Shown: positions 1 through 33,759 of the stretch, piece after piece
Layout: every line of letters begins with the position of its first letter
Position numbering within the stretch: the first letter of the stretch is position 1
Translations under genes and position numbers: made by a program
Notes under the pieces: model-generated
Seen by the model: the letters and a program-made list of their open reading frames with translations, nothing else
Databases searched by the model: none
What the model was told of the DNA's origin: nothing
Assembly: GCA_950097015.1 (NCBI GenBank)
Contig: CATNEN010000041.1
Span: forward strand, 558,001 to 622,000
DNA: 64,000 bases
Source of the DNA: Macrostomum hystrix
Lineage: Eukaryota; Animalia; Platyhelminthes
Direction: 5' to 3'

Positions 1-2175
1 ACGACTGCACGGCAAACGAGATAATGAAGTATGTTGGCATGGTGCTCTACATGGGGCTTAACAGAAGGGTGGAATTACGGCAGTACTGGTTTATTGATGC
101 GTTCTACGCTACTCCGTACTTTCAACTACCCTGTTGTCTGTCGCGGGATGGCTTTGCAAACATCTCATCGTTTCTGCGATTTTACGACTGCCAATCAGAG
201 GACGAGGAAGACGTCCTGGGGAAAATCCGACCGTTTATGAACATCCTGCAGGGCTGCTTCAAGAGTGTCTATATGCCAGAGAGAGAAGTCGCTGTTGATG
301 AAACCCTGGTGCACTTCAGGGGACGATTCAAGTGCAAGCAGTACATACCAACCAAGCGAGCCCGCTATGGTATCAAGATGTACTGCTTGTGTGAGTCGTC
401 AACAGGCTACCTCAGCAATTTCGCGGTTCACTCCACGTTGGAAGCGAATCAGCAAGTAGGGGTGGAGCTTAATGACGGAACACTAACCTTTGGCGGAAGG
501 GTTGTTGCCGAGCTCTGCCGAGAGATCTTGGGCCTGGGATACCATGTTTACTGCGACAGCTACTTCGGCTCCTTGTCCCTAGCAGAGTTCCTGGACACCA
601 GAGGCACCCTGCTGACTGCAACAGTTAGGGCCGATCGCGGAATTCCAGCAGAGCTCAGGGACTTAAGGCTTACTGCGCCGGGCACTGCCTTCATGCGCAA
701 CGAATCCATACTCGCCGTAAAAATCACGGATAGGAAAGCCAGCGGAGTTAAGCAGCTCTACATGCTGGACTCAGCGAATGTCGCCGCAGAACATGAAGTA
801 ACACGGGTTGGACATGGTGGGCGCCAGGAACGAGTGCGGAAATCACGGTCTGTGCTGGACTACAACAAGCATATGGGTGGCGTGGACCGCCTAGATGCAA
901 CCGTGCAACCCTATAGACCTGATCGAAAGACCTTCCGCTGGTTCGTGCGCCTCGGTGTCCACATGATGTTGGTATCATGCAGGAATGCTTGGGTAGTGTA
1001 CACGCGCTGTGGAGGAAAAAAGGTTTTCGGGCAGTTTCTGGACTCAGCAGTGCGACACATGATCGAATCGACCGGTCCCGGTCGTAAGAGGAAGCTTCAC
1101 CTGGGTCCTGTGAGAGTCGGAACCGGGCACCTGCCAAGAAAGTTGCCGCCAACGGACAAGCAAGCTCACCCGACAAAGCGATGCCGAGTGTGCTTCAAAG
1201 GTCAGTCTGCCAGGAAAACAGTTTTCTGCTGCCCTGAATGCGTCGGCCAGCCTGGGTTGTGTCTTGAAGGCTGTTTTGAACGTTGGCATGCGGCGGCTGA
1301 GATGTAAGGATAAACAATTTTTTCTATGTTAAATACTTTCAAATCTGGAAAAGCGTACAGTCTAGGGCACACGTTTTTAGTCAACTTTTTTATATTTTGC
1401 GCATGCACACATGTAAAACCTGTTTAAAATGAAAAAAAACTGCAGCAACGTTACCGCTTCATGTGTTTTTGTTCATTTGTTTGTATATTGTTAAATGCGC
1501 GTCAAATTTTGAAATTTCTCCCACTAGAAGATGATCTCGTTTTGATTTGATCTATTTTGATTCGCCTAGACAACTGATTGTTCACAGTAGAATTTTAGAC
1601 CATTTTATTACGTCTTAAAAGCCATAGTCGTATCATCTAGCATATTTATATTTTTGGAATTAAAATATGATTGTGATGAGTCTTTATCTGTAAATAGCTC
1701 GTGCATTTACTGGTAATAGCTGCGTAATGTCTCGAAATATATGGAGAAAAAAACTTTTCTTGTACATGTGTCTCCTTAATACAGAATTTTAACCATCACG
1801 TTCTACATGTACACACGTATTAGGTATTTAAATTTTTCCGCTGCAAAACTATTCTAATATGTTTTTTGCTCGTAATATATGCCCAAAATCAACAGTTTTG
1901 TTGGAGGTTGTCTGAAAAGATCATCATATTTTATACACCCGTATTAGCACTTGTTGATTTACATGTAATAAACGGTATACCACTGTTAAATATCTTTTGT
2001 CTGAAAGGTTACGCCAAGAAATGCAAAGCTATTTTCGATTTTGTTTCATGGCCAGCTGGGCTGGCCATTCCGGCAGTTGGGACCGTGTAGCTTTTCAACA
2101 TGAAACTCCCATAGACTATGGGCAGTTTGCTTAGTGAGCCATGGCCAGCAGGGATGGCCATCCGGGTTTTCGGGG
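1..2175 (+). mobile_element. piggyBac DNA transposon copy 1 (left end outside the window)
   Basis: Transposase ORF 24-1307. Right end ...TTTTCGGGG followed by TTAA (2176-2179), the canonical CCC/GGG terminus with a TTAA target. Subterminal repeat CATGGCCAGC-GGG-TGGCCAT at about 2047 and 2140. Confidence 0.85.
24..1307 (+). CDS. piggyBac transposase (PGBD4-like), N-terminus probably upstream of the window
   Basis: Motifs VDET, YCDSYF and MGGVDRLD carry the three catalytic Asp. Also KQYIPTKRARYGIK and a C-terminal Cys-rich domain CRVC...CCPEC...LCLEGCFERWH. No internal stops. Confidence 0.92.
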   Translation: MKYVGMVLYMGLNRRVELRQYWFIDAFYATPYFQLPCCLSRDGFANISSFLRFYDCQSEDEEDVLGKIRPFMNILQGCFKSVYMPEREVAVDETLVHFRGRFKCKQYIPTKRARYGIKMYCLCESSTGYLSNFAVHSTLEANQQVGVELNDGTLTFGGRVVAELCREILGLGYHVYCDSYFGSLSLAEFLDTRGTLLTATVRADRGIPAELRDLRLTAPGTAFMRNESILAVKITDRKASGVKQLYMLDSANVAAEHEVTRVGHGGRQERVRKSRSVLDYNKHMGGVDRLDATVQPYRPDRKTFRWFVRLGVHMMLVSCRNAWVVYTRCGGKKVFGQFLDSAVRHMIESTGPGRKRKLHLGPVRVGTGHLPRKLPPTDKQAHPTKRCRVCFKGQSARKTVFCCPECVGQPGLCLEGCFERWHAAAEM

Positions 2176-2420
2176 TTAATCTCTTGCTCACCAATCAGTT
2201 AATCAGTACGTTTCACTGCACTTTAATTGTTTCGCTTTCTATCGTCCTCTTAGCCCATAGACTACGCATCCTGCCCGCCCCTTGTTAACTCAATCGTTGT
2301 CTATGTTTTTAATTCCGTGCTCGGTACAGTTCCCCTTTAGTTGCTTCTAGTGCGCACTAAGCCCACTAGATCTTCGGACCAAATGCTTTTCACTTTCTAA
2401 ATACAAGTTAAATAAAAAAG

Positions 2421-2840
2421 GAGAATTTAGACTTTTGGCAATTCAAAGTCTAAGCCCTGGATTTCTTAGACTTAAAATGTGGAGCTTGGACTTTTAGCAA
2501 TTCAAAGTCTAAGCCCTGGATTTCTTAGACTTAAAAAGTAGAATTTAGACTTTTAGCAATTCAAAGTCTAAGCCCTGGATTTCTTAGACTTAAAATGTGG
2601 AGCTTGGACTTTTAGCAATCAAAAGTCGAAGCCCTGGATTTCTTAGACTTAAAAAGGAGAATTCAGACTTTTAGCAATTCAAAGTCTAAGCCCTGGATTT
2701 CTTAGACTTGAAAGTGGAGCTTGGACTTTTAGCAATAAAAAGTCGAAGCCCTGGATTTCTTAGATCTAAAAAGTTGAATTTAGACTTTTAGCAATACAAA
2801 GTCAAAGCCCTGGATTTCTTAGACTTGAAAAATAGAAGCC
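2421..2840. repeat. About 59-60 bp tandem repeat, about 7 units, alternating A/B variants, with an internal palindrome
   Basis: Unit core TTAGACTTT-TAGCAATTC-AAAGTCTAA-GCCCTGGATTTCTTAGACTT. Linkers alternate between AAAAGGAGAATT-like and AAATGTGGAGCTT-like. Confidence 0.9.
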
Positions 2841-2868
2841 CTAACTTTTTCTTGCCTTTCTCCTTCAG

Positions 2869-3780
2869 GTGCTTCAGTACTTTCCGGATCAACAGTTCTG
2901 CTTATTCCGGCATGGAATCGGATCGTGCAAGCAGTTGTTGCGTGCACTGGGGCGCATTGCCGCCCCTGCCGCCGCCGCCGCCGCCCCTGCCGCCGCTGCC
3001 GACCCTGCCGCCCCTGACGAAGACGACACACCTGGGCGTCGGGCGTCCCGGGGTTTAAATGTTGCTCTGACGGCATTTGCGGATGCTTCTCGGGTGCAAT
3101 TCGGTGGATTAATGCCTCCTCTTTCGCAGCCCGTAGCAGATATGCTACGAGCTGTGGCAATGTGCCTGCAGCGAAAAGATGCGCAACGACTTCTGTATTT
3201 GGGCAAGGCCGCTGCCGAAGTGGCGGCCTTGGCTGTGTCCTCGGCTTCGGAGGAACTTCGTGGTCCCGGGAACGCCGCTCCCGCCGACGCCGACGCTGCT
3301 CCCGCCGACGCCGACGTTGCTCCCGCCGACGCCGACGCCGATCCCGCCGACGCCAACGCCAATCCCACCGACGCCGACGCCGATCCCGCCGACGCCGACG
3401 CCGATCCCACCGACGCCGACGCCGATCCCGCCGACGCCGACGCCGATCCTACCGACGCCGACGCCGATCCCTCCGACGCCGACGCCGATCCCGCCGACGC
3501 CGACGCCGATCCCGCCCCCGCCGACGCCATCGCACCGGACGGTCGTGGCGGGGCGGGTCCCGGCCCGTCGGCGCCGCAGGCGATGCAGAACGACGACCAC
3601 GACGACGACGACGACGACGACGACGACAACGACGAGCAGCCTCCGAAGAGGCGGAAAGTGGAAATATCATTCAGCACACCATGTTCTTTAGGGAAAAAGC
3701 TGGAGAAGAAGATCAGGGCTCCACGAAAGAAGGCTCCGCCAAAAAAGAAATCACCTGCAAAGAAGCGACGTCGTCGTTAG
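2869..3780 (+). CDS. Unknown low-complexity, probably nuclear protein (terminal exon): PADADAD repeats, poly-Asp, NLS, Lys-rich tail
   Basis: 303-codon open frame starting right after a polypyrimidine tract and CAG acceptor (2867-2868). Contains PPKRRKV and [17 protein letters not shown]. Alternative frames of the repeat are less protein-like. Confidence 0.6.
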
Positions 3781-4361
3781 CGTCGTACCGAAACAGCCCC
3801 CCTGGACTCTCAGACCTTCCCCTTTTCAATGCGCGTAGGTCGTCGTTAGCGTCAGCGTCGTGTCGTGGTCATTGCTATAAACTCTCGATGAGCGAGAATT
3901 AGGGAGTGTTATATATAGGCAGGGCGGCAAACAAGCAAGGAAATTTTGTCCCAAGCGACAACATGTCTGTTTGATTGTTTGATTGTTGTCTATGGCAAAA
4001 GTTGTTTGCCAGTTAAACTTGCAACAAGCTCGGAATATATCCGGGAAAGTGGTTTGTTAAATCCCACAAAAAAAAATCTATGTCAATAACCTTCAAGAGA
4101 GTGACTTTAACGTGGTTAAATTATACTTTTAAGCAAGACGACACCACTCAGTCAGCAGGCTCGGTAATGTCGTCTTTTTCGAAGCTTGTTTTTTCGACAT
4201 TTTTTATTGTCTATGGAAAAAGAACCGCAAAATTTGAGCTTACAGCAATCCAAATAGTATATTAATCATCCACCGGCCGTCCCCTGCAAATCAACCTATT
4301 TGGTCGTACTTTCAAACGAAGTTCAGTAGTCGTACTTTGCGTTTGCATTTACTGCAATCTT

Positions 4362-5247: not shown

Positions 5248-5840
5248 TATAATTAGTGTTTCTTTAAGGTTTCTGTTTTTGCATTGTTGTTGAGCTTTAG
5301 TTTTGTTCTTATTTGCTGATATTGGCAAGCAATCATTCAGTTATAAAGAATTTTTATCGTCTCATTTTTAAAGCAACCTGAATAAAAATTGAAGCTGTGA
5401 ATGTGCAAATGAGTAGAAATGCCTTTATGTATTTTGCAAGCTGCGTGATTTGTTTTTTTCGCGTTTAGAGACCTGCAAAGCAAAAAAATTTTTTTTACGA
5501 AGAAAAACATTTTTTGCTACTGAAAAAAAGAGTAGAAAAGCGCTATTTAAGCGAGTGACATATCTAGTTATTTTAGTATCTATGCTTCTTAGTTACTAGC
5601 AGTTCCAATGCATGAGCAACTCTCATATAGACAGACATTTCGATTTCATATAGACCATGGAATAGACAGCGATATCGCGATGACTGCAAGAAAGTGCGTC
5701 CTATGTCAGGAAAGCCGAAGCAGCCTATTGTTGTGCGAAGAGAACCGGGAGCGAATATTCTAAAATCTGTACGCAGAATTGTGCGCAGTACGAAGTTGAT
5801 TTTCCAATACACTAAGAATAAGTTTCTGGTGAAAATGCTT

Positions 5841-7161
5841 CCGGACAAAAACAGGACTGCTCAAATATTACTTCAGCTATGTGAGATATGAATCTGAAAA
5901 TCGATAATAATAATTTTCAATGTCTATGGACATAACTCCTGTAAAAGCTACAGCAGCTAATTTATGGTTTCTTGTCACTGCTTAATGCAAGCTTTTGCCT
6001 ATCGCTACCCCTGCGGAATTTCCTAGCTCTTATCTTACCTCTTACGATGGTCAAACAGCGCGAAATCGTTGTTGACTGCTTCAAGACCGGGAGATCGGCC
6101 AGGGAGTGCATGTAGCACCTGCAGGCCATCTACGGCAGCGAAGCCTTTTCGCGGAGCCAAGTATATCACATATTTGAACAGCTTCGTGAAGGTCACAATG
6201 GCTCTGATGGCAGAGGTCACCATCGTGATCCAACTGTTAGGACGCCAGCGAATGTGGCGATGGTTGAAGAGCTGATCAGCGACGACAGGCGCATCACTGT
6301 CAGGGAACTGGCCGGCTGGACTGGCATCTCGAAGACAACTGTTGACGAGATTCTGACCAAGGATCTGCAGCTGAAGCATGTGTCAGCAAGATGGGTGCCG
6401 GACCTGCTGACTGAGGAGAACCGAGCTGAGCGAGTTCTCTGAGCCAATAACTTCTATCGCCTGATGCGCAGCAATCCCGGCTTTCTTGATCGAGTCATCA
6501 CTGCTGATGAGACTTGGCTGCACTATGTGACGCCAGAGACCAAGGTTCAGTCGAAGCAGTGGGTTCCGCGTGCAGCTGCGGCCCCAACGAGAGCGCGGGT
6601 GTCGCGCAGTGCCAAGAAGGCCATGGCCATTGTGTTCTTCGACTCGAGCGGGCTGGTGTAAACGCATTATGTGCCAAATGGGCTGATGGTCAAATGCCAG
6701 TACTACTGCGAGGTTCTGGACACACTGCAAGAGCATATCAGCCGCAAGAGGCCGCAGCTGGCGCGAAGAGGCTGGTTCCTCCATCATGACAATGCCCGCC
6801 CCCACGTGTCAGCGTTGACCCAGCAGTTCCTGGAGAGGCGAGGCATTCAGACTGTGCCACATCCGCCGTACTCCCCGGACTTGGCCCCATGCGACTTTTG
6901 GCTATTTCCCAAAGTCTCAGCCGCGATCGCTGGCGCCCGTTTTGACTCCCTGCAGGAGGTCAAGAATGCTTGAGAGGGGGTCATGACCCCTATGCCTGCG
7001 TCTAGCTTCGCAGAGGCCTTCGACAAGTGGCTGGTGAGGTGGGAGCGGTGTCTGGAGAAAGGTGGCAACTTTGTTGAGAAGTGACTCAAGTTTCGTTTTG
7101 TTTGCATGCATTGTTGCTGAGTTGCTGAAAGCAGTCCTATTTTTGCCGGACAACCCTCGTG
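5841..7161 (+). mobile_element. mariner (DD34D) element copy 1, defective
   Basis: One reading frame 6047-7084 (345 codons) with 4 in-frame stops. Motifs WVP, TADETW, HHDNARPH, YSPDLAPCD; 34 residues between the 2nd and 3rd Asp. Right TIR ...GGACAACCCTCGTG then TA (7162-7163). Partial left TIR at about 5841-5861. Confidence 0.9.
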
Positions 7162-7807
7162 TATAATAGCATCTGGACTGGAAGCGAAATATAAATTTCA
7201 CAATTATTTTAACACATGGGGCCAATGTTTAGTTGAGCACAGCGGCACTCCAGAGAAAAATAACTACTTAAGCCGTCACACATCACAATGCGCCTACATT
7301 CCATGCATGCACATTGAATGTGGTGGAAATCCTATGTTGTGGAGAGAAATGGAGTCTACTTTTTCGGAGAAGCATTTCCCATTGATTTCAATGGCGTTTC
7401 AATTGGCATTCAATCGGTCCCCCAGCTTTTCACCATAGACACTTGTTCCAGAAATGCCACGACTTATGGCCACGTAGTGGTACCCTTTGAATTGAATTAG
7501 ATTTCCTAGTTGTTTCATTTCATACTCAACCTAGTTTCCTCAGTTTTCTTTGCCAAGGATTTCTGCACCATGAAAGCATATCTGGCATTCTTCTCGAATC
7601 TTTCATTAAACAGTTTTCTCTGAAAAGCTTCATTTTAAATCGATGCAACGACTTGGAATTTCGATCGATAACTTCTACAAGACGGGCATGGTTAGCTATC
7701 ACCCCTTTGCTGACGGCTGTCCCGTTTTTGGGCCATAGACTATTTGACAGAAGTCGCTGATGCTGCCCATAGCACCCCCTTCCCGCCTGCTGCTCGCTGA
7801 ATGGAAC

Positions 7808-8000
7808 TTTACCAGTTGGGTGCCGAGCAAGTTAATGGCGGTCGATCGAGGCGCGTAGCGCCGAGATCGTAATCGCCATTAACTGCGAGGCAGCCAACCG
7901 GTAAAAGCATTATAAGGCTTCAGGCCATAGACAAATCAACTCCCCCTATAACGCCGTTGCTTGTCGACCGTCATTATTGTGGCGTTGATTTGTCTATGGC
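7808..8000. other. Two adjacent hairpins upstream of YR1: about 98-nt imperfect stem-loop (7808-7905) and a perfect 17-bp inverted repeat bounded by CCATAGAC (7924-7940 / 7984-8000)
   Basis: AGTTAATGGCG (7830-7840) pairs with CGCCATTAACT (7874-7884). TTTACCAGTTGGGTGCC pairs with GGCAGCCAACCGGTAAA (2 mismatches). GCCATAGACAAATCAAC and GTTGATTTGTCTATGGC are exact reverse complements. Confidence 0.85.
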
Positions 8001-8066
8001 TAAGAGTGGGCAAGCGAGTCATCGTGCGAAGAGGGAGGGGGTTAGGAGCAGGGAGCGAAATTTATT

Positions 8067-9681
8067 TTGAAACTAAGTTTGTCTGCTTCTATCTTGGCTC
8101 TGGCTGAAATGGAGGAAATGGCAGCATTTCCTACCGGATTACTAGACCTGCGAGAAAGGGACGTGGTCGGTCTCACTGTGGACCAAATTGTGGAGCGCAT
8201 TGCCAACCAGCGGCTATTTAATGAGCCGCCAGATGAACTGCCTGAACTGCCTGTGGATGACGTCACGGAGGCGCTATTGTCTGGATTGCCTGAACTGCCT
8301 GATGATGACGCCACGGAGACGGTACTGTCTGGATTGGATCAGGTGGAGCTACAGAATCGCAATCGCACTGCTGTTGTCCACGAGAACTCTGCCGTCAAGA
8401 GGTTCAACGTCTGCATGAGGAAACTGAATATTGAGTGCGACCTGGCATGCGTCAATACTGAACAACTGGGCAAGTACCAACGGATCTTTTATGGCCTACT
8501 GCGCAAAGATGACGGTGGTCTGTATGCGCCGGCAAGCCTGGCATGTTTTCGCGCCGGACTTTACCGCTGCCTGAAGCGCACACGGTCAATTGATATAATC
8601 GGTGATATTGCCTTCACGCGTGCGAACGACTTGTTGAAGGTAATGGCTGCATTATTTGTGAAGGAAGGCGGCGAGTCGAAACAGTATGCCGCCATAGAAG
8701 AGGCAGATTTACGTTTGCTAGGACAATACTTCAATCGTATGGATCCTGTTTGTCTGATGCACGAGGCTTCAACATGATGTACCACTTCGGTCTACGTGGA
8801 CGGGAATGGATACGTACACTGGATCGGGACTCGTTTGTCGTGGTGAATGTCGAGAATGGTAAGCAGGCCTTCGCGTTGAACCCGATGGAGTCCAAAAACC
8901 GACAAGGTTCGCTGAAGCCGGGTCGGCTAGCAACACCAAGCAGCCTCTCATGGCTCAGACGGGCGCACCCGGTTGTCCGTTCGAGGGATTTAAACTGTTT
9001 CTGGAGAAGGTGGATGAGTCGAAGTGTACTCAAAACGTCGAATCCCGCGGTCTGTTTTACAAGCCAAAGATTGCTAAGCTGGGCAACGATTGGTACTACG
9101 TGAAGTGCCCTCTCGGAGTTGGAAAGCTCAGCACACTAATGCAGGACATTTCGCAAGCAGCGAGTCTCAGCCGGGTGTATACTGCACACTGCATTCGTGC
9201 TACAGTTGCCACTGAGTTGCATAACAGAGGCTTCAGAGTAGAAGAGATCGCCCGCGTCACAGGCCATGTCAGCTCGAGGACCACCGAACGGTACATACGA
9301 TTCGGCAGGAAAAGAAATGCCGACATGGCGAAGTTGTCTGAGGCACTTCAGTCCACACTCGGAACTGGGTCATCAACCGCAACAACAACTAGCAGTGATT
9401 GCATTGGGAGCGCCGGAAATGAGGACGTCGACTGCTGCGTCCGTGCCGGCAGCAGCACTAGCGGCATTGGCAAACTGCGTGCACCGCAGCTGAGATCCTC
9501 TGTTACGAATGCTGCTTGCAGCCAGACGCTCCGCCTATCCACTGCAATCGACGCGGAGCACGAGACCGACGAGGTGCTGGTTCAGGAGCTGCTGATGCAG
9601 AAGACGTCGCCGCATGATGCGGCCACCGTTCCACGAGTCATCATCATACGCGGTGGTACTTTCACGGGATGTCACTTCTAA
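8067..9681 (+). CDS. Crypton-like tyrosine recombinase YR1 (DUF3504/KCTD1-type), 2 frameshifts
   Basis: LRKDDGGLYAPASLACFRAGL, catalytic Arg in FGLRGRE, WYYVKCPLG, H-x-x-R in YTAHCIRAT, TGH, and Tyr in ERY. Frames join at about 8775 and 8945. Confidence 0.85.
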
Positions 9682-10156
9682 CAAACGGTCGGAAAGCAGG
9701 ACTGATTGTCACGCCGCAGCTGGTAAACTGAAATACATTTTCCTTATTCAATCGAACTAAACTTGCTGCACCCAAAACTGTTGCCCGTTTCTGCGCACCG
9801 TTTTTCCTACATACTTTAATTGATAATTGCTTCTGGCTCATGGCGGATTGGCGCAGTTTGTGCCATAGACATGCCATTATCGCTGAGTGATCGTTTATAC
9901 CATAATACGTTGCTGAAGCCTTATAATGGTCTGTGCGAGAGAGAGAGAAAGAGTGACAGAGCCATGTACATTCGTTTCGCTACAAGCATCGATCGATACT
10001 CCTACGACACCCACCCCCAACCTGTGGGGTGGGATTAGCTGTTAGCGCGGTATAAATGGAAGTGGTGTGCAGGCTGCAACAACAGAAAATTTTGTGCTAG
10101 CATATTTTTTTGGTATACAGCTAATTTTCGGGCCTTATTTACTTACTTTCTTTTGA

Positions 10157-11512
10157 ATGGAATCCTCCGACGAATATTTTTTACGGATGACGATTCGCTG
10201 ATCCGAACGATTCGTTCGGACTATACAAACAAGAGGGCGTGGAAGTTTTTTGAAAGACTGCATTGAGGAGGAACAAGTTCCAAAACTGGTGATGGACTGG
10301 CGTGACTGCACTGACGATGAGGTGAGGAAACTGTTTGGGATTGTTCTGCTGATGGGCCTGGACAAGAAGCCGGAGCAACTACTGGAGCCAGGATCCTGTT
10401 TACCATTGCTATTTTCTATCCCAGCCCAACGCTCTCTCAATGGATAGATTCAAGCAAATTCTTTCCTGCATGCGCTTTTACGACTTCACGGATGTACAGG
10501 AGGGACGATTAGCCAAAATGCATCCGTTTTTGGGCCTGGTGCAGCAGGCGAGCCGCGACAACTACATGTCACAACAACACATTTCCGTGGATGAGACGCT
10601 AGTCCTGTACAAGGGACGCCTAATATTCAAGCAATATATCCCTACAAAGAGGAGCAGATATGGCATCAAACTGTACTGCTTGTGTGAGTCCGAGACTGGC
10701 TACCTGTGGAATTTTGCTATCCATTCCACGGAGGAAGCAAATGGTCAGTTTGCACAGGGACTCGAGTGTGGAAACCTGTCCATCAGTGAGCGGATTGTGG
10801 TGGAGCTGTGCCGCGAGCTCCTTCAAATGAACTACAACTTATTTACGGATAGCTGGTTTACATCCTATCGTCTTGCAACCTGGCTACTGGCGAATGGCAC
10901 TCGTCTCACCGGCACCGTTCGCAGCAACCGTGGCGTTCCGCAGCTGCTACAACAACTGCAGGTTCAACCCACAAGTGCTGCGTTCGCGAGGAACGGCGAA
11001 GTGCTTGCCTGCAAGTTCGTGGACCGCAAGAACAGCGGGACGAAGAAAGTTTACTTCCTGGACACTGCTCGGCAAGCTGCGTGCGTGAACGTGCCTCGCG
11101 TCCGTCGCGGAGGTGAGCAGCAGGTGGTGGCCAAAGCCAGTGACCGTGATGGCCTACTCAAAGAGCATGGGTGGCGTCGATCGCATGGATTCGGCAGTGA
11201 CCCCCTACATCGCTAATCGGAAGACACTGCGTTGGTTTCATAAGCTCGCGTTTCACCTGCTGCTGCTGCTTCTGGTTCGCAACTCGTGGATCGTCTACCG
11301 CCAGCACGGTGGCACCAAGCCCTTTGTCGAGTTTCTTGGTAATGTGATCAGCATTTTGGTAGATGAGACTGGCAGGGGCAGGCGAATCTTCATTGTCAGG
11401 GCAAATGCAGCGGCTGGTGTACGCTCGTACCGGCAGGTCCGGCACAGCACTCTCCGAGCAAAGTACCGCTTACAGCTGCTCACGTTCGGCCCCGCAATCG
11501 ATGCCGCGTGCT
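10157..11512 (+). pseudogene. piggyBac transposase copy 2, frameshifted, truncated inside the Cys-rich domain
   Basis: VDET, KQYIPTKRSRYGIKLY, FTDSWF, MGGVDRMD. Clearly related to copy 1. Ends at RPRNRCRV where the IS630-like TIR begins. Confidence 0.9.
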
Positions 11513-11681
11513 CGACTTTGGCAAAAGTGACTTCAATTTCGGCAGCCCAGAGAAAAAGCATACGCCTGCCAGCAACATCTCTATGGTCAACTGTGGTAGA
11601 ATCGGTTAAAGCGTGCATTCAACTTTGGCAAAAGTGAGCGAATTTTGGCAACTCAACCGAACAATATGCCGAACGCGCGTA

Positions 11682-21673: not shown

Positions 21674-23104
21674 ATGGATCCGTTGGGTCAACCTGGAGCG
21701 TTGGACTGGTTAGATGAGTTGTTCGAACCAGCTAATTGAACAACAACTGGGGTATCAGAACCAACAGATTCGATGCGGCCTGTTATTATTAGGGCTGAAA
21801 CAGCTTCTGCATCTACATCCTCAGTGCGATTCGTTAAGCTAGATGAAGCTGATATTGAAGCGAAACTGGCCGCCGCTATTCCGAACAATACGCGTCGCAA
21901 AGAACAATGGGCCGTTAATATTTTCAACGAGTGGCGAAATGAGCGCCAAAGCGCAATTCTGCATGGCGATGCCAAAGGACTTCTTGCCTCCAAACAGATC
22001 GAAGAATGGAGTCGAGGCGATTGGAACGATCTTCTGAGGCGATTTTTCTTCGAGGTGCGCAAACAGGAGGGTGGCAAGTATAATGCGACAAGTCTGAAGG
22101 ACATTTTTGCCATGCTGCAGCACTATGTCATGGTTACTCTAAAGAAGGACTTTTCGTTCTGGAAAGACCCACAATTTTCGGACGCCAGAGCGACTCTCGA
22201 CGCTGCGATGAAGGAAACCGTTCGCGAAGGTAATATTCCTTCCATAGAGCAAGTGAGCCTATACCTCACGATTTTGAGCTGGCACTCTGGGAGCGCGGAG
22301 ATCTTGGTACATCTAATCCTCGGCTGCTGCTGTTTACCGTCATCATTTACATCGGCAAGACCTTTGCTCTACATGGAGGAACAGAGTTGCATGCGTTAAA
22401 ACATGACAAGAACATCATTGTGAGCAGTACTACTGATGGAGAATGTTTACTCTTCACAAAGCAGAGAGCTAATAGAACCAACAACCGTGGCTTGAAGGCC
22501 AAACCTACTCCTCCTCGTGAAATGCGTGCCTTCCATACACCTGGACACAAGCGCTGTCTTGTTTGTATTTACATGAAGTACAATGAGAAGCGCCCGGAGA
22601 ACTGCCATGTTAGCAGCATGTTCCTGAGCTACTACGAGTATCGCAGACAAGCATTGCTGCCGGAAAGTGGTATCAGAACGTAGCTCTTGGCCGCCACACC
22701 CTTGACAACATTGTTAAGGAGCTAACTAGTACTGGCAATGGCAATGGCATGCGTTTTACGAATCAATCATTAAGGAAGACCTGCGCAACTGAATTACGAA
22801 AGGCTGGTTTCGAACGAGCTGACATTGCTAGGGTCACGGGTCATTCAAGCAGTGCTATAGAGCGATATATTCGTCTCGACAGTACTGTCCATGTGCGCAT
22901 CTCAGACGCGTTGCACGCAGGCCATGCAGGGGGTACCACTACCACACTGACCAATCTACCAACGCATGCTACGGCTCTATCTGGTGCTACTGCCACTGGG
23001 GGGGCATTACTGCCTTATTTGCAACTGAAGACCATCGTCCTGCGAAGAAGATGAAGATTGGGGCGAACGGAGAGGAGAACTGTGTAACCATCACATGGGA
23101 GTGA
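21674..23104 (+). pseudogene. Crypton-like YR4 (ZMYM/DUF3504-type), full length but degenerate
   Basis: NTRRKEQWAVNIFNEW, FFFEVRKQEGGKY, FALHGG (catalytic Arg replaced by His), FTNQSLRKT (His replaced by Gln), TGHSS, ERY. Several frameshifts. Confidence 0.85.
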
Positions 23105-23456
23105 CAATCTACTTTTATTCCTTCAATAACGTGAACTTTCGGTGATCTGTTGTTCTTGTTCTCGCGTTTCGCGAATTCGTTTTTTGTGTTCATCCCATTT
23201 CCTGACGCTCCAAGTCCTCAAATCGTTTCTCAGGCCTCAAAACGAGGACTGAGAAACGGTTTAGAGCCTCGTAAAATAAAGCGTTTACCATAGACAGTTG
23301 GTTATTCTACAAAAAAGTAAAACCTCGTTAAACGATACATTAAATAGTTGTAGTAGGTTAAGTATACATTCTCCTCCTTTTCTCAGTGTGGCTATGGAAA
23401 ATAGCATCCGAGGACTTTTTTCCATAGACATATTGAGAAAAGGAGGAGAAAATATA

Positions 23457-24587
23457 CCTTTTTGCAATCTAGTTTGCCAAAACCGCAATCAATTTTGCCC
23501 CCTAAGAGAATTTACTTGTATATTTCTAATATCTTGGCTTAACCTGCCCATTCATTGCCACAGTTTGAATCATAGACAAATCCTTGAAACTGCATTCAAT
23601 TTTGCCAAAACTGCGATCAAGTTTGCCCATAGTAAAAAGCAAGCACCGCAGACAAACATAGCAGCGCAAGAATGGCTCAGCGCGGATCTTATAACAATAT
23701 TTCTACGAAGGACCGGCAGCGCTTAATTCAAGCATTTCAGAACGGAGAGGACTGGCAAGATTTCGGTAGACTTTTGGGCATCGCACGAAGAACCGTGACC
23801 TATATCGTTGGGCGATTTATTGCAAGTGGTCGCATTGATCCTCTTCCTCGCGGAGGTGCCAAACGGAAGTCACTCAGCGATGCTATGGTGGAGAGAATAT
23901 GTAGCTATGTCCAAAGTAATCCAACAGCAACCTTGCAACAAATGAAGAACAATCTCAGACAGGAATTTCCAGACGCCCCCGATGTGAACCTCTCAACCAT
24001 TAGCCGCGCTCTTGGCGGCCAGCTACGCTAAAGCTTGCTCGACAAGTGCCCCAGGACTGGAACAACGACATGACAAAGGAGGCGCGAAGGATGCATGCTC
24101 AGTGGCTGCTAGATGACGGAAGTGTACGCCATCTTTTGTACCTGGATGAGTTCGGAGTTAACTTGTGGACTGCGCGGACACAAGGCAGAGCTCCACGTGG
24201 CGATCGGTCCATAACAATCGTCGATTGTTGGGTTTCGGCCAGCGTGGACGAAATCTGAGCATTTGCCTGGCGATTTCCCAGGAGCTTGGTCTTGTGCACT
24301 TTGCTCTGGTCGAAGGCGGATTTCGCAACGAGCACTTTGCCGGATTTTGTAGTTCTGTTTGACGGAGCAAGGGCCCTGTTAGTTTTAGTTATTCGTTCTC
24401 AAATAAATTCGTTTCGGGCAAACTTGATCGCAGTTTTGGCAAAATTGAATGCAGTTTCAAGGATTTGTCTATGGTTCAAACTATGGCAATGAATGGGCAG
24501 GCTGAGCCAAGATATTAGAAATATACAGGTAAATTCTCTCCGTGGGCAAAATTGATTGCAGTTTTGGCAAACTAGATTGCAAAAAGG
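23457..24587 (+). mobile_element. IS630/Tc1-like element B, internally deleted, 172-bp TIRs
   Basis: 23457-23628 is the reverse complement of 24416-24587. The left end follows TA (TATA then CCTTTTTGC). ORF from 23672 has an HTH region and LDEFG but stops before the second Asp. Confidence 0.9.
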
Positions 24588-24957: not shown

Positions 24958-25807
24958 CGCTATAGGCGCTGCTATTTGAACTTCCTGTTGAGTACGTTGT
25001 GTTAATTCGAATTTGCTAAATAAAAATTTAGCAGGACTGAGAACTACTTCTCAGGCCTCGTTTGGGGACTGAGAAACAGTTCTCAGTCCTCAAACAACCA
25101 AAAAACTACCATAGAAGGTTTGTTCCTCGGGAAAAGGATGAGACTCGGAAAGAAGCGAGAAACGCACTTTCCGTAGGTTAAATAAATTGATGGGTACGCC
25201 TGGGAATGCCACAATTGTCGGAACCAACACTCCATCCGACGGGTTTCCTTCTTCGATGGCTCCTACCTACAGCTGGCCAAGATAGTGGAGCTCACCTACT
25301 TTTGTTCCCTGGAGAACAAGACTGTGATTTTCTTCTGAATGACCGACCAAATGACCATTTTCACTCGTTGCTGTTTGTTGTTCTTAGTTCATTTCATAGT
25401 TCTCCGATATTCCGTAATGAGGAAGTGAAATTTCAAAAGGGAAAATAACTACGCGAAACAAAGTAAAACATTGCCAAAAATATACCTTTTTGCTTCTTAT
25501 TTGGTTTTTTTATCATTCAAATTGGTGCGTGGCCGTCAGCAGTCTGACGTGGCAGCGTAGTAGAGATTCTGCATGTTATGTTATGATAGACTCATTCTCT
25601 GTGTGTTTGATTTATGTCTATGGACACGATTAATAAACGAGTACTAAAGAGCACTTATAGCTACACAGCTGCTCTATATCCTTCCTAGCATCCAGAAACT
25701 TAAGACTTCTGTGTCGGAACACAACATGGTGTCAGAGGTGCACTTGTGAAGGGCGCTTGATTTGAATAGTCAAATGCAGCACTGTGCTCAACTGGATCTG
25801 AATTCAA

Positions 25808-28800
25808 ATGGACGGCGGGCTGAAACCCCCAAAGCAATTCTGCTTTGATGAGCACAAGGCGGAAAACTGGAGTAAATGGATTTCTGCGTTCGAGCTCTAT
25901 ATGACCGCAACAAAGCGTGACGAATCACCTGCTAAAGTGCAAATAGCGACACTGCTAACAGCCATCGGAGAAGAAGGTCGTGAGATTTATTCAACTTTCG
26001 AGAAATCGGAAGGAGACGCAGAGCTGTCGAAAGTGACGAAACAATTCGAAGAATACTGCAAGCCGAGTGCGAACGAAACTTTCGAGCGCTACAAATTTCG
26101 GCAACGCAGGCAGAACGAGCATGAGAGCATTGACTCATTCGTGAGCGGCCTGAAACAACTGATCAAGAAATGCTCATTCGAGAAGCCAGCCTACGAATTG
26201 ACGGTGAAAGAATCAATAATCAGAGACCAGATTGTCCTCGGTATCAGAGACACGGAGTTGCGAGAACGGCTCCTACGTGAGCAGGAATTGACGCTAGACA
26301 AGGCTATATCTATCTGCCGTGCAAGTGAATCATCAAAGACCCAAGTGCGGATCATGACGGGAAACACCTCCAGAGAGACTTCGAATTACATCCAGAAAGA
26401 AGTAAATTTAGTTGTGAAACCTCGCTCAACAGGCAGACCAGATTTCACGTACAAGGAGAGACAACAGAACAGAAGGTGTGGGTCCAAAGGAAAGCCGATG
26501 GTAGGAAAGTCGGAGGGTTGCTCATTCTGTGGGAAGAAACATAAAAAAGGTGCATGCCCTGCATATGGCAAGACGTGCAAAGCATGCGGAAAGCAAAACC
26601 ACTTCAGTAACGTCTGTCGAAATAAGACCGTTAGAGCCTTGGATCAAAATACAAACGGGAGCTCAGAATCTGATCGTCAAGATTCGTGGGTCATGTCACC
26701 ATCTCTACGACCGGGTGGCAACCACAGAGACAGTAGAACAACTGTCGGTATCAAAATCGAAGGTCAGCTGGTGAAATGCAAATGCGACACAGGAGCGGAC
26801 GCAAATGTACTCCCTGAGCATTTGCTTAGGCGGATTTCACCAAACACGCGGATACAGGAAACGTCCTGCAGACTCTTTTGTTATAAGAGGACACGCCTAA
26901 CAGTCGCAGGGAAGGTACAAATGAAACTGGAATATGAAGGAGTCAAGCGGGAAGATGAATTTATTGTGATCAAAGAGAAGCTCATTCCACTCATAGGATG
27001 GAAAACCGCGGAAGAGATAGGCCTGGTGAAATTTAACTTCGGAGTTTCTGTTCAATCTGAAGGGTTCAAGTCCACGTGGACGGATGAAAGATTTCTTCGT
27101 GAGTATCCCGATGTCTTTGAAGGAACAGGTTGCTTACCTGGGAGTTATCACATCAGCCTGCGCGATGACAAAGAATCTTGGACGGATCGCCCTCGAAGAA
27201 TCCCGTTTGCTGCAATGCAACCCTTGAAGGCTGAAATAGATCGCCTGGTTTCGGATGGACTTATCACCAAGTGCGACGAGCCTACGAAGTACGTTTCAAA
27301 TGTGGTCGTCGTCTGGAAGGCAGACAAGACTATACGTCTTTGCCTAGACCCTCAGCGTCTGAATGCCAACATAATAAGAGAGCAGTACCAGATACCGTCT
27401 TATGACGAAATTATTGCGGAAATCGGAAACGCTGCTCTGTTCTCAACTTTTGATGCGACTGCGAGTTTTCACCAGATTGCATTGGATTATGAAAGTTCGT
27501 TGATGACGTGCTTCACACGCCTTTTGGACGATATCGTTGGCTCAGAATGCCCTATGGAATTTGTTCCGCGTCGGAAGTCTACCAGAAGCGAGTTCGAGAG
27601 GAGATCTCGGACAAGATCAGAAACTGCAACAATTTTATAGATGACTTCATTGTTTGGGGCAAGACTGTGGAAGAACACGATGAAGCTGTGAAGCAGCTTA
27701 TGGAAATATGCCGTGCGAAGAATTTGCGCTTGAATTATAAAAAGCGGAAAGTCGGATTGAAGGAGTTGAAATTCCTCGGCAATATACTTTCGCACACCGG
27801 AATTAAAGTAGACCCAGACAAAGTGAAAGCAATGCGCGATATGCCCCGACCAAATACTCTATCCGGCAATGAGAGAAAACAGCAACTTATGCGATTTCTG
27901 GGATGTGCACATTTTTTGTCCAAATTCATTGCGGATTTGTCATCTAAAGCAGCACCGCTACGAAGATTGCTGACGAAGAATGCTCAGTGGAACTGGACGA
28001 ATGAACACGAAAAAGCGTACGAATCAATTTTGCAGAGTCTTAGCTCGCTATAACCCAAACGTGCCACTAACTCTGTCAGTCGATGCTAGTCAACACGGTC
28101 TCGGAGCAACTATCCTGCAAGATGGACACCCGCTGGAATACGCTTCGTCATCACTGACGCAATCCCAACGGAAGTATGCTCAGATCGAAAAGGAACTTTT
28201 GGCTATTGTGTTTGGCTGCAAGCGATTCCACCAGTACGTCTGGGGACACAAGGTAACTGTCGAGAGCGACCACAAGCCACTAGAGAACATCTTCCGGAAG
28301 CCAATTTCAACTCTTACAGCAAGATTGCAGAGACTGATGCTACTAGTTCAGAAGTACGACCTGCACATTGTATACGTTCCCGGTAAAGACCTGCACATTC
28401 CAGACACTCTGAGCCGCGCTTTCTTAAAGAACGTGCATGCCTCAAAACAACTCGAAGATGACATCGAAGGTCACGTGCTCGGTGTTAGAATTTCGGTTGG
28501 ATTCCCAGAACTGATGCAGAAACTGGAAAATGAAACGGCAAAGGACTCAACACTGCAACAACTCGCTGAAATCATCGGTGTTGGTTGGCCACACCACAGA
28601 AGCCAGCTCGTGACTGAGCTTCGTTGTTTCTGGAACATCAGACAGGATCTGACTGCGCATGGCAATCTGATCTGGATGAAGAACCGAATAGTCGTTCCAA
28701 ACTCAATGAGAATGGAAGTGCTACAGAAGCTGCATACTGGACACCCTGGAATTGTGAAGGCAAGCTTAAAGGCGTCAGAGAGCGTCTACTGGCCTGGAAT

Positions 28801-29884
28801 TCGAGGTGATATTCAAAATATGACTTCAGCGTGCATTGCCTGCCAGGAAAGCCAAAGAAAGCCACAGAAGGAACCAATGGTGGTTCAGTGCTTACCGGAC
28901 TACCCATTTCAGGAATGTGGCACAGATATTTTCCATATTGACGGGAAGAATTACCTGATATATGTTGATAAATACAGTCGGATGATCGAGTACGCTAGGA
29001 TCAACAATACTTCAGCTAACTCTGTGATTCCCCAACTAAAGAAGTATTTCCAGACCTATGGAGTTTGCGAGACTTTAAGATCTGACAATGGACCTCCATT
29101 CTCAGGAAGAGAATTTGCCCGTTTCGCTAAAGAGTACGGCTTCAAGCATTTTACATCATCGCCGAAGTACAGCCAGTCCAACGGATTAGCGGAAAGAGGC
29201 GTTCAAACGATCAAAAGTATTTTAAAGAAGGTTCTAAAGAGCAATGAAGGCGAGCACATGGCACTGCTACATTACAAGAACACTCCTATTGAGCATGGAA
29301 TGCCATCACCCGCTGAACTGGTCTTTGGACACAAACTGCGCTATGATTTGCCGATCCCAAAAGCAGATCTGATTCCTAGACATGTCATGTCCAGGAAAGT
29401 ACTGCAGAAGCTGAAGGACCAGCAGGACAAGACTGAAGAGTACTACAACCGTGGATCTAAGGAGAGGAGAGAATTTGGTTGTGGAGAAAAGGTTTGGATG
29501 CACGAATCAACACGACGATGGCAGCCAGCAGAAGTGCACATGAGAGTGAATGACCGTTCTTATATAGTTCGCGATGGACAAGGAAAGCTACTACGTCGGA
29601 ACAAATCGTTTTTGACTCAACGGACTGGAGCAGCAGAAGAACTCGCTGTTCCACAACGAGAAAACCTTAAAGACGCATTGGGAATGGAAACTGCCGCACC
29701 ACTGAAAGCTTCTCAAAGTCAACCGGATCAACACGAAGCAGTGGAGGAAAATGGAGGAAGCAAACCATCAGTACAAGCACCTAATGCTCAACAATGTCAG
29801 TCACCTAGGACAACTGATACGCATGGCTATACGACACGAAGTGGACGTGTGGTGAAGCCAGTCGTGCGATTTCAGGCACATTGA
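25808..29884 (+). CDS. Gypsy 2 gag-pol (CCHC, protease, RT, RNase H, integrase), 2 apparent frameshifts
   Basis: CKACGKQNHFSNVC; KCDTGAD; FIDD; DASQHGLG, EKELLA, SDHKPL; integrase H/H/C/C, DIF, SDNG, E. Frame changes at about 27510 and 28030. Confidence 0.93.
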
Positions 29885-30056
29885 TTGAAAAAGTATAAGT
29901 GTAGAACAGAACTTCCGGAAATAGGATTTATTTTTATTACATACAGGAATCCCTCTTAAGAAGGGAGATGTTATGTTATGATAGACTCATTCTCTGTGTG
30001 TTTGATTTATGTCTATGGACACGATTAATAAACGAGTACTAAAGAGCACTTATAGC

Positions 30057-30112
30057 CACAGATTCTATATTACCTGTTCTTCATATTATTCTATGATAAT
30101 ATAGAATCTGTG
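30057..30112. mobile_element. 56-bp micro-MITE in the Gypsy 2 3' LTR
   Basis: Perfect 16-bp TIR CACAGATTCTATATTA / TAATATAGAATCTGTG. 8-bp direct repeat CTTATAGC at 30049-30056 and 30113-30120. Absent from the 5' LTR. Confidence 0.75.
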
Positions 30113-31210
30113 CTTATAGCTACACAGCTGCTCTATATCCTTCCTAGCATCCAGAAACTTAAGACTTCTGTGTCGGAACACAACACTGCATAGACAAACC
30201 ATAGAAAGCCATAGACAACAGAAATCAATTTGGCTTTGACTGCGAGCAATTTGGGCCATAGCTGGAAGGCATAGCTAAAGCAAAGAATGTCGCAGAGAGA
30301 GGACCATTCGCTAAAATCCGTCTGGTGGACAGAGAGGATAGTGAATGCATACGTGACGGGTGGCGACTGGAAGGCGCTTGGTCGAATGATGGGTTTCGCA
30401 AAACAGTCGGTTCGAAACATTGTGACCACGTACGAAGAGACCGGAAGAACGCACACTCTGCCGAAAGGAGGAGTGAAGACGCAAAAGCTCACCGAACCTT
30501 TGGTGAATAGACTGGTTGAATTTGTCAGTGACTACCCTGCCGCTACGCTGGAGCAGATGAGATCGCACCTGCTTTGGGGCAACGACGATGACTTCAACAT
30601 CAGTCTCAGTGCCATTTGTCGTGCTCTGGATGGTCAGTTGATCACACTATAGCTTCTGCGCCAGGTCCCTGTTGATTGGAACACGCCTGTCACGAAAGAA
30701 AGTCGCAGGAATGCACGTGCAGTGGCTTCTGGACGAGGGCAGCCAAGAACATCTTCTGTTCATGGACGAGTTCGGCGTGAACATCTGGACGGCCAGAACT
30801 CAGGGGCGAGCCCCCAGAGGGATACGAGCAGTGACGGTGGTGAATGGTCAGCGAGGCCAAAATCTTACAATCTGCCTTGTCATCTCGCAACATCTGGGGC
30901 TCGTGCACTACACGCTGGTCGAAGGTGGATTCAGAAACGAGCATTTCGTGGATTTTCTCTCGGAGGTCGACCAGCTGGTGGAAGGAAGCTTCGTGCTTCT
31001 GTCTGATGGCGCCCGTGCTCATCTGAATGCGCCAGGGATGAGCGATGGCCACATTCACAGATTCCTTCCACCTTACTCGCCCTTCCTGAACCCGGCCGAA
31101 AGAGCTGGCGCTGCCATGAAGGCTGACCTGAAGAGACGCCTGCACGTGGGTGGAATCCAGGTGGAGGTCGCCAACAGGCAACAGGCTGCAGCACAGGGCC
31201 TCACGTTGCA

Positions 31211-32561
31211 TCACCCATCGAAGAGGCATTTGGCAAACATCGGCTGTTGCACACTTCGCATGTCAACTTGAGCTTGCTGCATGACTGTTGCACTAGTGGT
31301 TGCACTCGTAGTCGCCTCGGTTGGTGGGGCCAAATTGTCACTAACAGCGGTAGCAACCTTCCTGAGGGTTCTGTCACGCTTGCGTGCGAGATAACGTCGA
31401 ACAGTGGACTCCGATCGTTGTCCCGTTACCGCCATTATCTCACCCATAGGCATTCCTTTGTCGAAAAGATCTGCAATATGCGTGACGCGTATGCAGTGAT
31501 TCGTGTACTGCTTGAAGAGGTTGCACACACTACTAACGTGCTTCATGAATGCAGCCAACCAATTGACACCGCGCACGTGCGTAGTAGAGAAGCGAATTTG
31601 TCCTCCCGAATTGTTAGTCAGAGGGCGCGGAAAGAACGAGGACGAGGACGAGGACGAAAGAACGTAACAAACTCTGATAATGCAGGATCAACTCCCGCTG
31701 AGCGCCGTAGATCCGACTCTGTTTGCGCTGATTTCCCTTGCATTTTGTTGGATCGCTACTCTGGTTTTTTGTCTTTAACGGCGGCAACGCAAGATATGGA
31801 TTCCCATCAGCGTCGACTTCTTCTTGGAGCGTGCCAACTTGCTTTAGACTTGACAGGTGTTCTTGACCTCTCTCGCCCAGGACATACAGCAGCGTAAATA
31901 GTACTTCATCTTGCAACCGTTCAGCTGTAGAATGGTCAAAATAAGCACGCATTTTCTGTAAATCGCCTTCTTCTATTGGCTCGTGCTGATTGACAGTGCC
32001 TCCATCAGCATGAAAATGCCGCACCTTTACTCGCAGCATCCGGTTGGCAGTGGCGAACTCGTCACTGGAAATAATATTTGTTCGACGCTTCAGCACGAGA
32101 GTCAAGTACCTCTGCACTCCAGCACGAATGCAGACCAACGTAGCTGGCGAATAGCAACTGCCGTCAGATTTTTTTAGACAGAAGTAAAAGAACCTTAGAA
32201 ATTCGGCCAAGCGACTGTCACTGATCACGCTCACATCCACAGCACCATGCTTCTTCAAAAACTCCACGAACATTTTGCCATACAGAAACATGTGTTCTCG
32301 TGTAGTTCTCGGCAGTGATTCCAGTTCGACAACATCCATCGCACTGGGTAAATCAGATAGTTCTGGAAGCTCGACACTAGAAACCGCAGCGGCCTCATCA
32401 GCCGTCTCGATTTTAGACAGGTAGTCGATAAAATCTCCAAGAATTTCATCGGAACTGTGGTTCACGGCGCTCAGTTCACTCAGAAAATCTAGTTCAGTAG
32501 ACGAGACGCCATCTAATTCTAAACTGTCGACCGGTAGATTTTTCCAGTTGATAAGAGGCAT
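31211..32561 (-). CDS. Crypton-like tyrosine recombinase YR6 (related to YR1), frameshifted
   Basis: LKKSDGSCYSPATLVCIRAGV, LGERGQE (catalytic Arg), YTNHCIRVT, TGQRS, RRY. Frameshift near 31600. Confidence 0.85.
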
Positions 32562-32890
32562 TTTTAATTCGATTTCTCTCGCTTCTTGCTTCTAGTTCTT
32601 AACTACCTAACAGACTTCATGGTCGAGCTTTTCTTTTAGAGAACTGTATTCTAAAAAATGTCTATGGTACGATTAGTCGGGGCTCTGCCCCCACACCCCC
32701 GCAAGGGAGCTGCGCTCCCTTGACCCTGCTCACTGCCGAGCTATTATCTATGGCACGAAGACACTGCAGCGTTACTTAATGGCGTGGCTTAATGGCGTTA
32801 CATAATGAACAACCGAAAATGCTAGTCTAATAAGTCTATATGATAATGCGCTTATGTCTATGGTTTCAGAATTAAATAATGATCAGCATT

Positions 32891-32932
32891 ATTCTGATTC
32901 TGATTCTGATTCTGATTCTGATTCTGATTCTG
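32891..32932. repeat. (ATTCTG)7 microsatellite
   Basis: Read directly from the sequence. Confidence 0.95.
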
Positions 32933-33759
32933 TGATCATTATTCAAGTCGGAAACCATAGACTTAATCTACCATTATACGAGTAAATTAGGCCCTAGGAT
33001 ATAAGTAATAAATCACGATATAAGCGATGCGAGCTCGTGTTCGGGGGACTCACCGTTTGCTGATTGTGGCACAGTGGCAGAGTGTCAGCGATAAAATTTT
33101 CTAACAAAAAACCAAAAAAGTCTGTTCCTCAGCTTTACTTCACTCGACTGTTCACTGGCCATATAATATGGCAGACGGATTTTATCCATAGTCTATGGCC
33201 GTGTGTGTTTTCAGTAGAAGCCATAGACAAACAGTCGATTTTGGAGGGTGCTAAAAATTTTAGTCCGTTAAGCCCATCAAGACCGTCAAGCCCTTCTCTC
33301 GCACCAAGGTCTAGAAAAAACGATCGATAAAAGCCTATTTTCTCTTATTGGTTAATACAGGGGGGAGTTAAAAATGTGTAAATGACTCGATTAACGCCAC
33401 CCCACCCCTCCGACCACTTTGTAGCGCGCCCAGACTGGACTTTGCTATCTGCACCCCAAACCCGATGTCTTCTCTTGAAAGACAAAAAAACTAAATAACA
33501 GGAAAGGTTTAACTGACAGAATACATAGAATGGTGGATTCTGTGGTTTAACTGCATTTTTTCTATAGAGTAATATAATATTCCTTTCTGCAAAGCAGTTT
33601 GCATATGTAGTTTATATTTAGGCTCAATGGCGCAACTAGGAGACTTTGGTCCGGCCCCGCCCCTATTTTCTGAAGGGGGGCGGACCAAAGGTGAATCATC
33701 CTGGACGAGTGGCGGATGTGGTTCAAGGGCCGTTTTGGTGAAAAATTCGCTTGGTCCCC

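Follow-up and report, generated by a model that had tools for sequence, protein, structure and literature searches.

Integration beside a DNA-bound landmark is already known for a few retrotransposons, as are transposons which carry sites for host factors. Insertions of the long terminal repeat (LTR) element Tf1 cluster at −9 and +19 relative to the Sap1 motif (PMC5741268), and several unrelated elements, Ty1, Ty3 and the Dictyostelium TRE and DGLT elements, are reported to converge on one class of protein-bound landmark and thereby on safe sites (PMC6101501, PMC7459421). Transposition of the Drosophila P element “is not site-specific” and has a broad preference for promoters and origins (PMC7776569), and P-element homing denotes insertion near genomic sites matching DNA borne by the element (PMC3261919). 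Here, we describe an 8-mer, CCATAGAC (hereafter the word), in 64,000 nucleotides of the flatworm Macrostomum hystrix (assembly GCA_950097015.1, contig CATNEN010000041.1, positions 558,001 to 622,000; this whole stretch is called the window). The word recurs in many unrelated transposable elements (TEs) and is an integration landmark for one of them, a P-superfamily transposon which we call P element A.

The closest parallel is Tf1 with Sap1, where insertions likewise occur at set distances from a short motif, in P element A 20–116 bp from CCATAGAC. Our system differs in that a cut-and-paste transposon of the P superfamily rather than an LTR element is involved, the insertion window is wider and the reader of the motif is putative only, and also in that the motif is found in ~20 TE families, whereas that of Sap1 marks host promoters. 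P element A resembles the Drosophila P element in its transposase with THAP and RNase H-like domains, its terminal inverted repeats (TIRs) and its 8-bp target duplications, and, as in P-element homing, it carries the same word beside which insertions occur. Drosophila homing is engineered however, and acts over kilobases, whereas P element A is natural and, for 24 of 28 insertions, has settled no more than 120 bp from an 8-mer. Given that the Drosophila element is said not to be site-specific, P element A departs from it markedly.

The landmarks of the Ty and Dictyostelium elements are host tRNA genes, whereas here they lie inside other transposons, hence islands would reinforce themselves. 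A short host-factor motif in the non-coding DNA of TEs is also described for the heat-shock elements in LTRs of Macrostomum lignano (PMC12801592). These are known host regulatory elements in certain families only, whereas CCATAGAC is sharper (eight invariant bases), spans at least five superfamilies and is linked to integration. It is unusual that one sharp word is common to cut-and-paste, tyrosine-recombinase and LTR elements while being essentially missing from genes and gene-rich DNA, and that a P-superfamily transposon lands so close to it.

In bacteria, the asymmetric site of an architectural protein, integration host factor (IHF), which lies beside an A/T tract, recurs near the ends of many unrelated mobile elements; this serves as an analogy only, and we know of no eukaryotic IHF equivalent with sequence specificity. 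The word provides a concrete handle on the formation of transposon islands and their sharp borders, and points to a factor which could be isolated with a simple oligonucleotide. It may also allow transgenes to be inserted in a site-directed manner in Macrostomum, which serves as a model of regeneration and for which transgenesis works.

Abundance, shape and carriers of the word

The word has 26 exact matches in the window, compared with a mean of 1.23 and a maximum of 6 in 100 dinucleotide-preserving shuffles, none of which reaches 26, and it is the top-ranked 8-mer outside tandem arrays (all pattern counts are of exact matches). Scaled to 33 kb, this density is ~40-fold above the shuffles and ~7.7-fold above the average of this genome, in which 21,428 matches were counted over 220,453,370 bases in 42 contigs, against 6,012 for a reversed-letter control (3.6-fold over-represented). 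Part of this genome-wide excess is held by satellites with 52-, 21- and 84-bp periods, and a duplicate of the locus on contig 10 adds one to some counts. The original prediction, made from the letters of the window, had listed these matches as 14 forward and 11 reverse between 2109 and 33228 plus a single one at 61069; every position proved correct, and the strong enrichment it proposed is evident from the shuffles.

Variants of CCATAGAC with one mismatch have 0–5 copies each in the window, save CCATAGTC with 10; the latter was considered as a functional variant and rejected, most of its copies coming from a 35-bp satellite at 39606–40027. The flanks of the sites are mutually unrelated, apart from an LTR pair (25616 and 30011). 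Across 52 non-redundant contexts (flank identity <60%) the word is accompanied by TT at −5/−4, a purine at −1 and A/T at +1 (94%) and +2 (88%), agreeing with the earlier remark that the next bases are usually A and then A or T. This gives the extended consensus TT-N-N-R-CCATAGAC-W-W, and an asymmetric motif of ~15 bp would be the kind of site read by a sequence-specific protein. Furthermore, AAATCAA was noted just downstream of the motif at several unrelated sites (3988, 24467, 25616 and 30209). Sites of YY1/Pho, SRF/MADS, Smad and Sox/HMG and p53 half-sites do not match at all eight positions and none is claimed as the reader. A literature search for CCATAGAC returned only primers and unrelated matches, and no motif of this kind is mentioned in the genome paper of M. 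lignano.

The DNA examined comprised the window plus 100 kb on each side. Within it, 37 sites are concentrated in a single 50-kb stretch, from 16.4 kb upstream of the window to window position +33.2 kb, which is a transposon island. A cluster had been proposed at 2109–33228; its right edge stands, and its start has to be moved to 16.4 kb upstream of the window. The remaining 214 kb of gene-bearing DNA contain four sites, as many as for the control word (n = 4), hence bulk non-TE DNA is at chance level. This outer DNA includes JAB, BRE, G protein-coupled receptor (GPCR), FYVE, cadherin and ABC host genes as well as one Gypsy element without the word, and no excess of CCATAGAC near host genes was found in it, a small sample in which genes were recognised without annotation. 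The word therefore drops out after 33.3 kb because the island ends there. Inside the island, none of the 37 sites falls in any open reading frame (ORF) of at least 150 aa, where Pfam-supported TE ORFs make up 34% of the sequence (P = 2.5e-7), and the earlier statement that transposase ORFs are free of the word thus extends to the whole island.

Copies elsewhere in the genome show the word to be part of ~20 families, including piggyBac, P, IS630/Tc1-mariner, Crypton and Gypsy LTR elements, miniature inverted-repeat transposable elements (MITEs) and unclassified repeats, so that the proposed sharing by unrelated superfamilies is borne out for at least five of them. Its usual position is 40–130 bp inside the family termini. 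As the copies are independent and the families have distinct ends and distinct proteins, this is not one small family misread as several. Individual elements of the island are designated by letters (Table 1).

In the piggyBac element, the word is found 68 bp inside the left terminus (−535) and 64 bp inside the right one (2109, within the palindrome CCATAGACTATGG), the two ends having a common subterminal block which contains the motif; the earlier reading had placed a site in a piggyBac subterminus, and both ends turn out to have one. Sites had also been assigned to the TIRs of IS630-like elements, which holds for C and K, whose long TIRs both bear the word (86 and 244 bp inside). The left TIR of C has CCATAGAG, and the word is conserved in an independent copy of C at L024. 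In the Tc1/mariner-like element D, 7 of 8 other copies retain it ~90 bp from one end. As had been noted, the Gypsy element has the site in each of its two LTRs, and a 98% copy on contig 1 has kept both. Element F has three motif-like words at 30189–30216, the exact one at 30209, ~121 bp inside. In repeats H and M the word lies 75 bp inside the left end (site 2255) and 68 bp inside an end, respectively, and independent copies show that it is intrinsic to K, L and M. Copies of H, J and M diverge by 4–8%, and K has only six exact termini. The copies of repeat U form inverted pairs 1–2 kb apart.

Insertion of P element A beside the word

P element A belongs to the P superfamily, with THAP (PF05485) and TNP-like RNase H (PF21787) domains, 45-bp TIRs and 8-bp target-site duplications (TCTCCATA and GGTCAAA(+1)). 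The element is young, with copies 98–99.6% identical, and all seven independent copies contain the word. When intact, it has this internal word in sense orientation, at a distance of 285 bp from its left end and preceding the transposase ORF by ~60 bp, and a one-mismatch copy is found ~80 bp from the right end. Five of seven copies examined also have the word, or a one-mismatch version of it, in unrelated DNA just outside their left end.

Targeting was tested on 84 exact termini taken genome-wide. Outside the terminus, GTCTATGG occurs at 20–53 bp in 20 termini and at 61–116 bp in 13, and CCATAGAC occurs at 34–56 bp in 8 and at 61–101 bp in a further 8, where ~0.25 would be expected for each orientation and distance class. 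Overall, the exact word is present 20–116 bp outside the end at 45 of the 84 termini and at ~86% of the paired insertions (24/28), the expectation being ~1 occurrence at genome density and ~7.5 at island density. Even against island density, the set at 0–60 bp has P < 1e-14. No word lies <20 bp from a terminus, and the distances peak at 30–49 bp. The stretches which separate word and terminus are largely unrelated from copy to copy, and the end nearer to the word can be the left or the right one, therefore the association reflects target choice and not a composite repeat. The word is thus an integration landmark for P element A. The original prediction had offered a host-factor site or a recombination/targeting site as alternatives; the targeting part stands for this one transposon, whereas a recombination crossover does not (see below).

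The insertion distances have a best period of 10.25–11.5 bp (P ~0.007–0.03), although this pattern was seen before being tested and is a lead only. Thirteen mini copies of 48–99 bp, with little beyond the two TIRs, were also detected (e.g. C7:4651760–4651846, C37:2556311–2556363 and C11:2638609–2638656). They lack the internal word, and 10 of the 13 lie within 60 bp of the motif, but they may have arisen by deletion in place once an element had inserted; probably they represent footprints of excision or gap repair. Satellites at C1:750456–751087, C1:1762462–1762679 and L029:1200–1460 (52-, 21- and 84-bp periods) hold one motif per unit, and one motif of the 84-bp array has a copy of P element A at a distance of 29 bp. 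By eye, 7 of 20 target sites show CGGGC or GGGCC between the motif and the insertion point. This resembles the GGCC core of CATGAGGCCA, a sequence which both subterminal regions of P element A have (at 66 and 56 bp), and could constitute a further target determinant, recognised by the THAP domain.

Several junctions in the island also lie near the word of a neighbouring element. The Gypsy element is inserted into F, 23 bp from the motif cluster of the latter, K is flanked by two motif copies at 28 and 47 bp, Crypton B lies 59 bp and Crypton Q 60–79 bp from such a copy. Other elements abut exactly, with piggyBac meeting H at 2180 and K meeting L at −4804. Of 46 right ends of Crypton B, 6 have the word no more than 60 bp away on the outside, where ~2 would be expected at island density, and this is well above the genome average.

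Weighing the possible roles of the word

We favour, with a probability of roughly 0.6, the explanation that TT-N-N-R-CCATAGAC-W-W is the recognition site of a putative sequence-specific DNA-binding factor, carried by many transposons and serving as an integration landmark. It builds on direct observations, namely the enrichment, the word being intrinsic to the families, its avoidance of ORFs, its absence from gene-rich DNA and the targeting by P element A. Under this explanation, the one to three copies which many unrelated M. hystrix families have in non-coding sequence would mark landing places, with P element A integrating 20–116 bp away and several other island elements settling 23–79 bp from the copy of a neighbour or against its terminus. 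Each newcomer adds copies, hence insertions would pile up end to end and nested, and this could build a sharply bounded transposon island between host genes. The carriers might benefit through help with end recognition or transposition, through transcription, or through homing to safe DNA.

Several points weigh against this explanation. The putative reader protein is proposed only from the shape of the motif and from the targeting. Precise targeting is demonstrated for one family and suggested for others, the proximity of Crypton B to outside copies is weak, and Tc1/mariner-like D, which carries the word, has none of its 16 flanks within 150 bp of other sites. The location of the word near ends is to some extent trivial, since most non-coding sequence in an autonomous transposon is terminal, and the word does not always point the same way with respect to the terminus (9 versus 4). 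A broader form of the favoured explanation is possible, but we hold it only tentatively. Here one factor, whose site most active families of at least five superfamilies carry near their ends, with cutting and joining 20–120 bp off, would guide both the end recognition of residents and the integration of newcomers from several superfamilies, a natural homing of many families in a self-organising island. Elements would in that case park end to end in safe islands rather than in genes.

A different role, which we consider unlikely, would be solely that of a transcription-factor site within the promoters of transposons, e.g. for germline or stem-cell expression, with P element A landing nearby simply because promoters occupied by the factor have open chromatin. 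In accordance with this, the word is in sense orientation upstream of the ORF in P element A (~60 bp), Crypton L (55 bp), Crypton T (69 bp), piggyBac (307 bp) and F (433 bp), factor sites borne by TEs are known from the M. lignano LTRs mentioned above (PMC12801592), and promoters and origins are frequent places of Drosophila P insertion (PMC7776569). The bias upstream of ORFs is too weak to decide however (~10 sense versus 4 antisense, by eye), and a pure promoter role fits poorly with the word at both piggyBac ends, in either TIR of C, K, R and U and at the 3′ ends of Cryptons B and Q, and with its antisense copies in the Gypsy LTR, in C, in D and in a Merlin-like element. It is also kept in triplicate in Crypton B derivatives which have no ORF, and it shows no excess in the 214 kb of gene-bearing DNA. 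Moreover, a tight window of 20–116 bp with suggestive helical phasing exceeds a general open-chromatin preference in specificity. Should instead the THAP domain encoded by P element A read the word, the targeting would be private to this transposon and the spread of the word in others a separate matter; the exact internal copy at 285 bp and the one-mismatch copy ~80 bp from the right end would fit, but we regard this as highly improbable. The common subterminal word of the element is CATGAGGCCA, which is unlike the motif, the motif-like copies are direct rather than inverted and far from the TIRs (an inverted arrangement of CCATAGAC-like copies beside both TIRs was not found, those present lying at 285 and ~80 bp), and ~20 other families would be left unexplained.

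Cryptons deserve separate consideration, as the island has five Crypton-type ORFs, and B, L, Q and T all have the word near their ends, in inverted arms or in terminal hairpins. It could hence be an accessory or arm-type binding site of Crypton tyrosine recombinases, the island being a Crypton pile-up with other carriers incidental, although we think this improbable. Cryptons have terminal direct repeats of 4–6 bp, and most CryptonS elements of oomycetes and diatoms have TATGG termini (PMC3212892). Crypton B ends in AATG, and TATGG forms the 3′ half of GTCTATGG. This overlap may be a coincidence or an old recombinase preference. The word is however not at the crossover in B, L, Q or T, in contrast to what the original prediction implied by placing sites at tyrosine recombinase junctions. 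Crypton sites lie 17–312 bp inside the ends (most ≤125 bp) or 59–79 bp outside; in Crypton B, with its AATG direct repeat, they are 58–192 bp inside. Nor is the word restricted to tyrosine-recombinase elements, being intrinsic to piggyBac, P, IS630/Tc1-mariner, Gypsy LTR and MITE or unclassified families, with copies elsewhere that have no Crypton association, and Crypton B itself is only weakly near outside copies. Finally, chance, base composition or one misread small repeat family can be given practically no weight. Two of the sites (25616 and 30011) are indeed LTR copies of one element, and satellites contribute to the genome-wide excess, but such explanations fail against the shuffles (0/100), the 52 non-redundant contexts and the ~20 families with distinct ends and proteins.

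Elements of the island and its surroundings

A Pfam scan of the island detected two piggyBac elements, five Crypton-type tyrosine recombinases, four IS630/Tc1-mariner DDE_3 transposases, one IS1595/Merlin-type transposase and two Gypsy elements. The tyrosine recombinases carry Phage_integrase, DUF3504 and QRICH1-type domains, of Crypton origin according to PMC3212892. Element boundaries (Table 1) were set by whole-genome searches with pieces of the island. In a protein search, the recombinase of Crypton L had 48% identity to an M. lignano protein, with Logan relatives too.

Table 1. Elements and sites of the word, in window coordinates (negative values lie upstream of the window; distances are to the word)
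Feature	Position	Strand	Remarks
piggyBac element	−603 to 2180	+	Pfam DDE_Tnp_1_7; ends from three 99% identical copies; transposase ORF ends at 1304
Repeat H	2180 to 2428, resumes 3931–3964	+	at least 15 copies, 91–98%, same start base
Sites 3988 and 4209	3988 to 4216	−	low-copy island DNA; sole other match is the near-identical contig-10 duplicate
Repeat J	5840 to 6250	+	at least 12 copies, 88–96%, common start; site 5922 (−) 82 bp inside left end
Truncated old copy of P element A	7162 to 7582	+	site 7433
Site in another repeat	7733 to 7740	+	59 bp outside left end of Crypton B
Crypton B	7800 to 9928	+	Phage_integrase domain; terminal direct repeat AATG; full 96% copy elsewhere
IS630-like element C	11510 to 14578	+	147-bp TIRs; site 14485 in right TIR, 86 bp from end
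Tc1/mariner-like element D	11681 to 13023	+	nested in C; exact word lost in window copy
Site in further repeat (14849–15130)	14934 to 14941	−	upstream of single-copy Crypton-type ORF 15238–15807
Repeat U	15741 to 16010	+	long TIR of another DNA transposon; site 15951 ~55 bp inside end
Site in repeat N	21502 to 21509	+	60–79 bp outside left end of Crypton Q
Crypton Q	21589 to 23361	+	QRICH1/DUF3504-type recombinase ORF; site 23288 66 bp inside right end
96-bp palindromic unit	23362 to 23457		site 23422; between Crypton Q and MITE R
MITE R	23457 to 24587		172-bp TIRs; site 24467 in right TIR, 113 bp from end
Gypsy LTR retrotransposon	25574 to 30185	+	sites 25616 and 30011 (−), 42 bp inside each LTR
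IS630-like element F	30186 to 31213, first 98 bp at 25477–25574	+	DDE_3 domain; intact empty-site copies elsewhere
Crypton T	31212 to 32979	−	at least 10 copies; site 32660 69 bp upstream of recombinase ORF, sense
Palindrome CCATAGTCTATGG and third copy	33186 to 33228		low-copy DNA, right edge of island
Isolated site	61069 to 61076	−	outside island; consistent with chance

The left end of Crypton B has sites at 7925 (+) and 7992 (−), 125–192 bp inside, and its right end has one at 9863 (+), 58 bp inside. The left pair (7925–7999) forms perfect 16-bp inverted arms (CCATAGACAAATCAAC) ~43 bp apart. ORF-less derivatives of this element, ~400 bp long and with at least 10 copies at 99%, consist of only the three motif-bearing end pieces. 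Crypton L has the word 48 bp inside, and in Crypton T the sites at 32856 and 32955 occupy one arm each of a terminal hairpin. The palindromes which had been described at 2108–2122 and 33186–33198 are both present.

Repeat H is split here by ~1.5 kb of 59/118-bp and 21-bp tandem repeats which other copies of H do not have, with arrays at 2415–2832 and 3272–3528, and the long “ORFs” in window 2415–3930 are low-complexity artefacts. The whole island is duplicated in inverted orientation on contig 10 (window 1–34200 and L009–L010 versus C10:80373–114597) at 98–100% identity, this being a residual haplotig or, alternatively, a segmental duplication of very recent origin. This copy has ~1.28 kb extra exactly at the right end of Crypton L (gap C10:109157 to 110438).

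Beyond the island, window 34300–64000 is rich in short-period satellites, with units of 20 bp at 37529–38511, 35 bp at 39606–40027 and 28 bp at 44716–45258, in addition to (TCTG)n at 55507–56184 and an 11-bp unit at 62668–62841. A GPCR-like ORF is located at 52451–53818.

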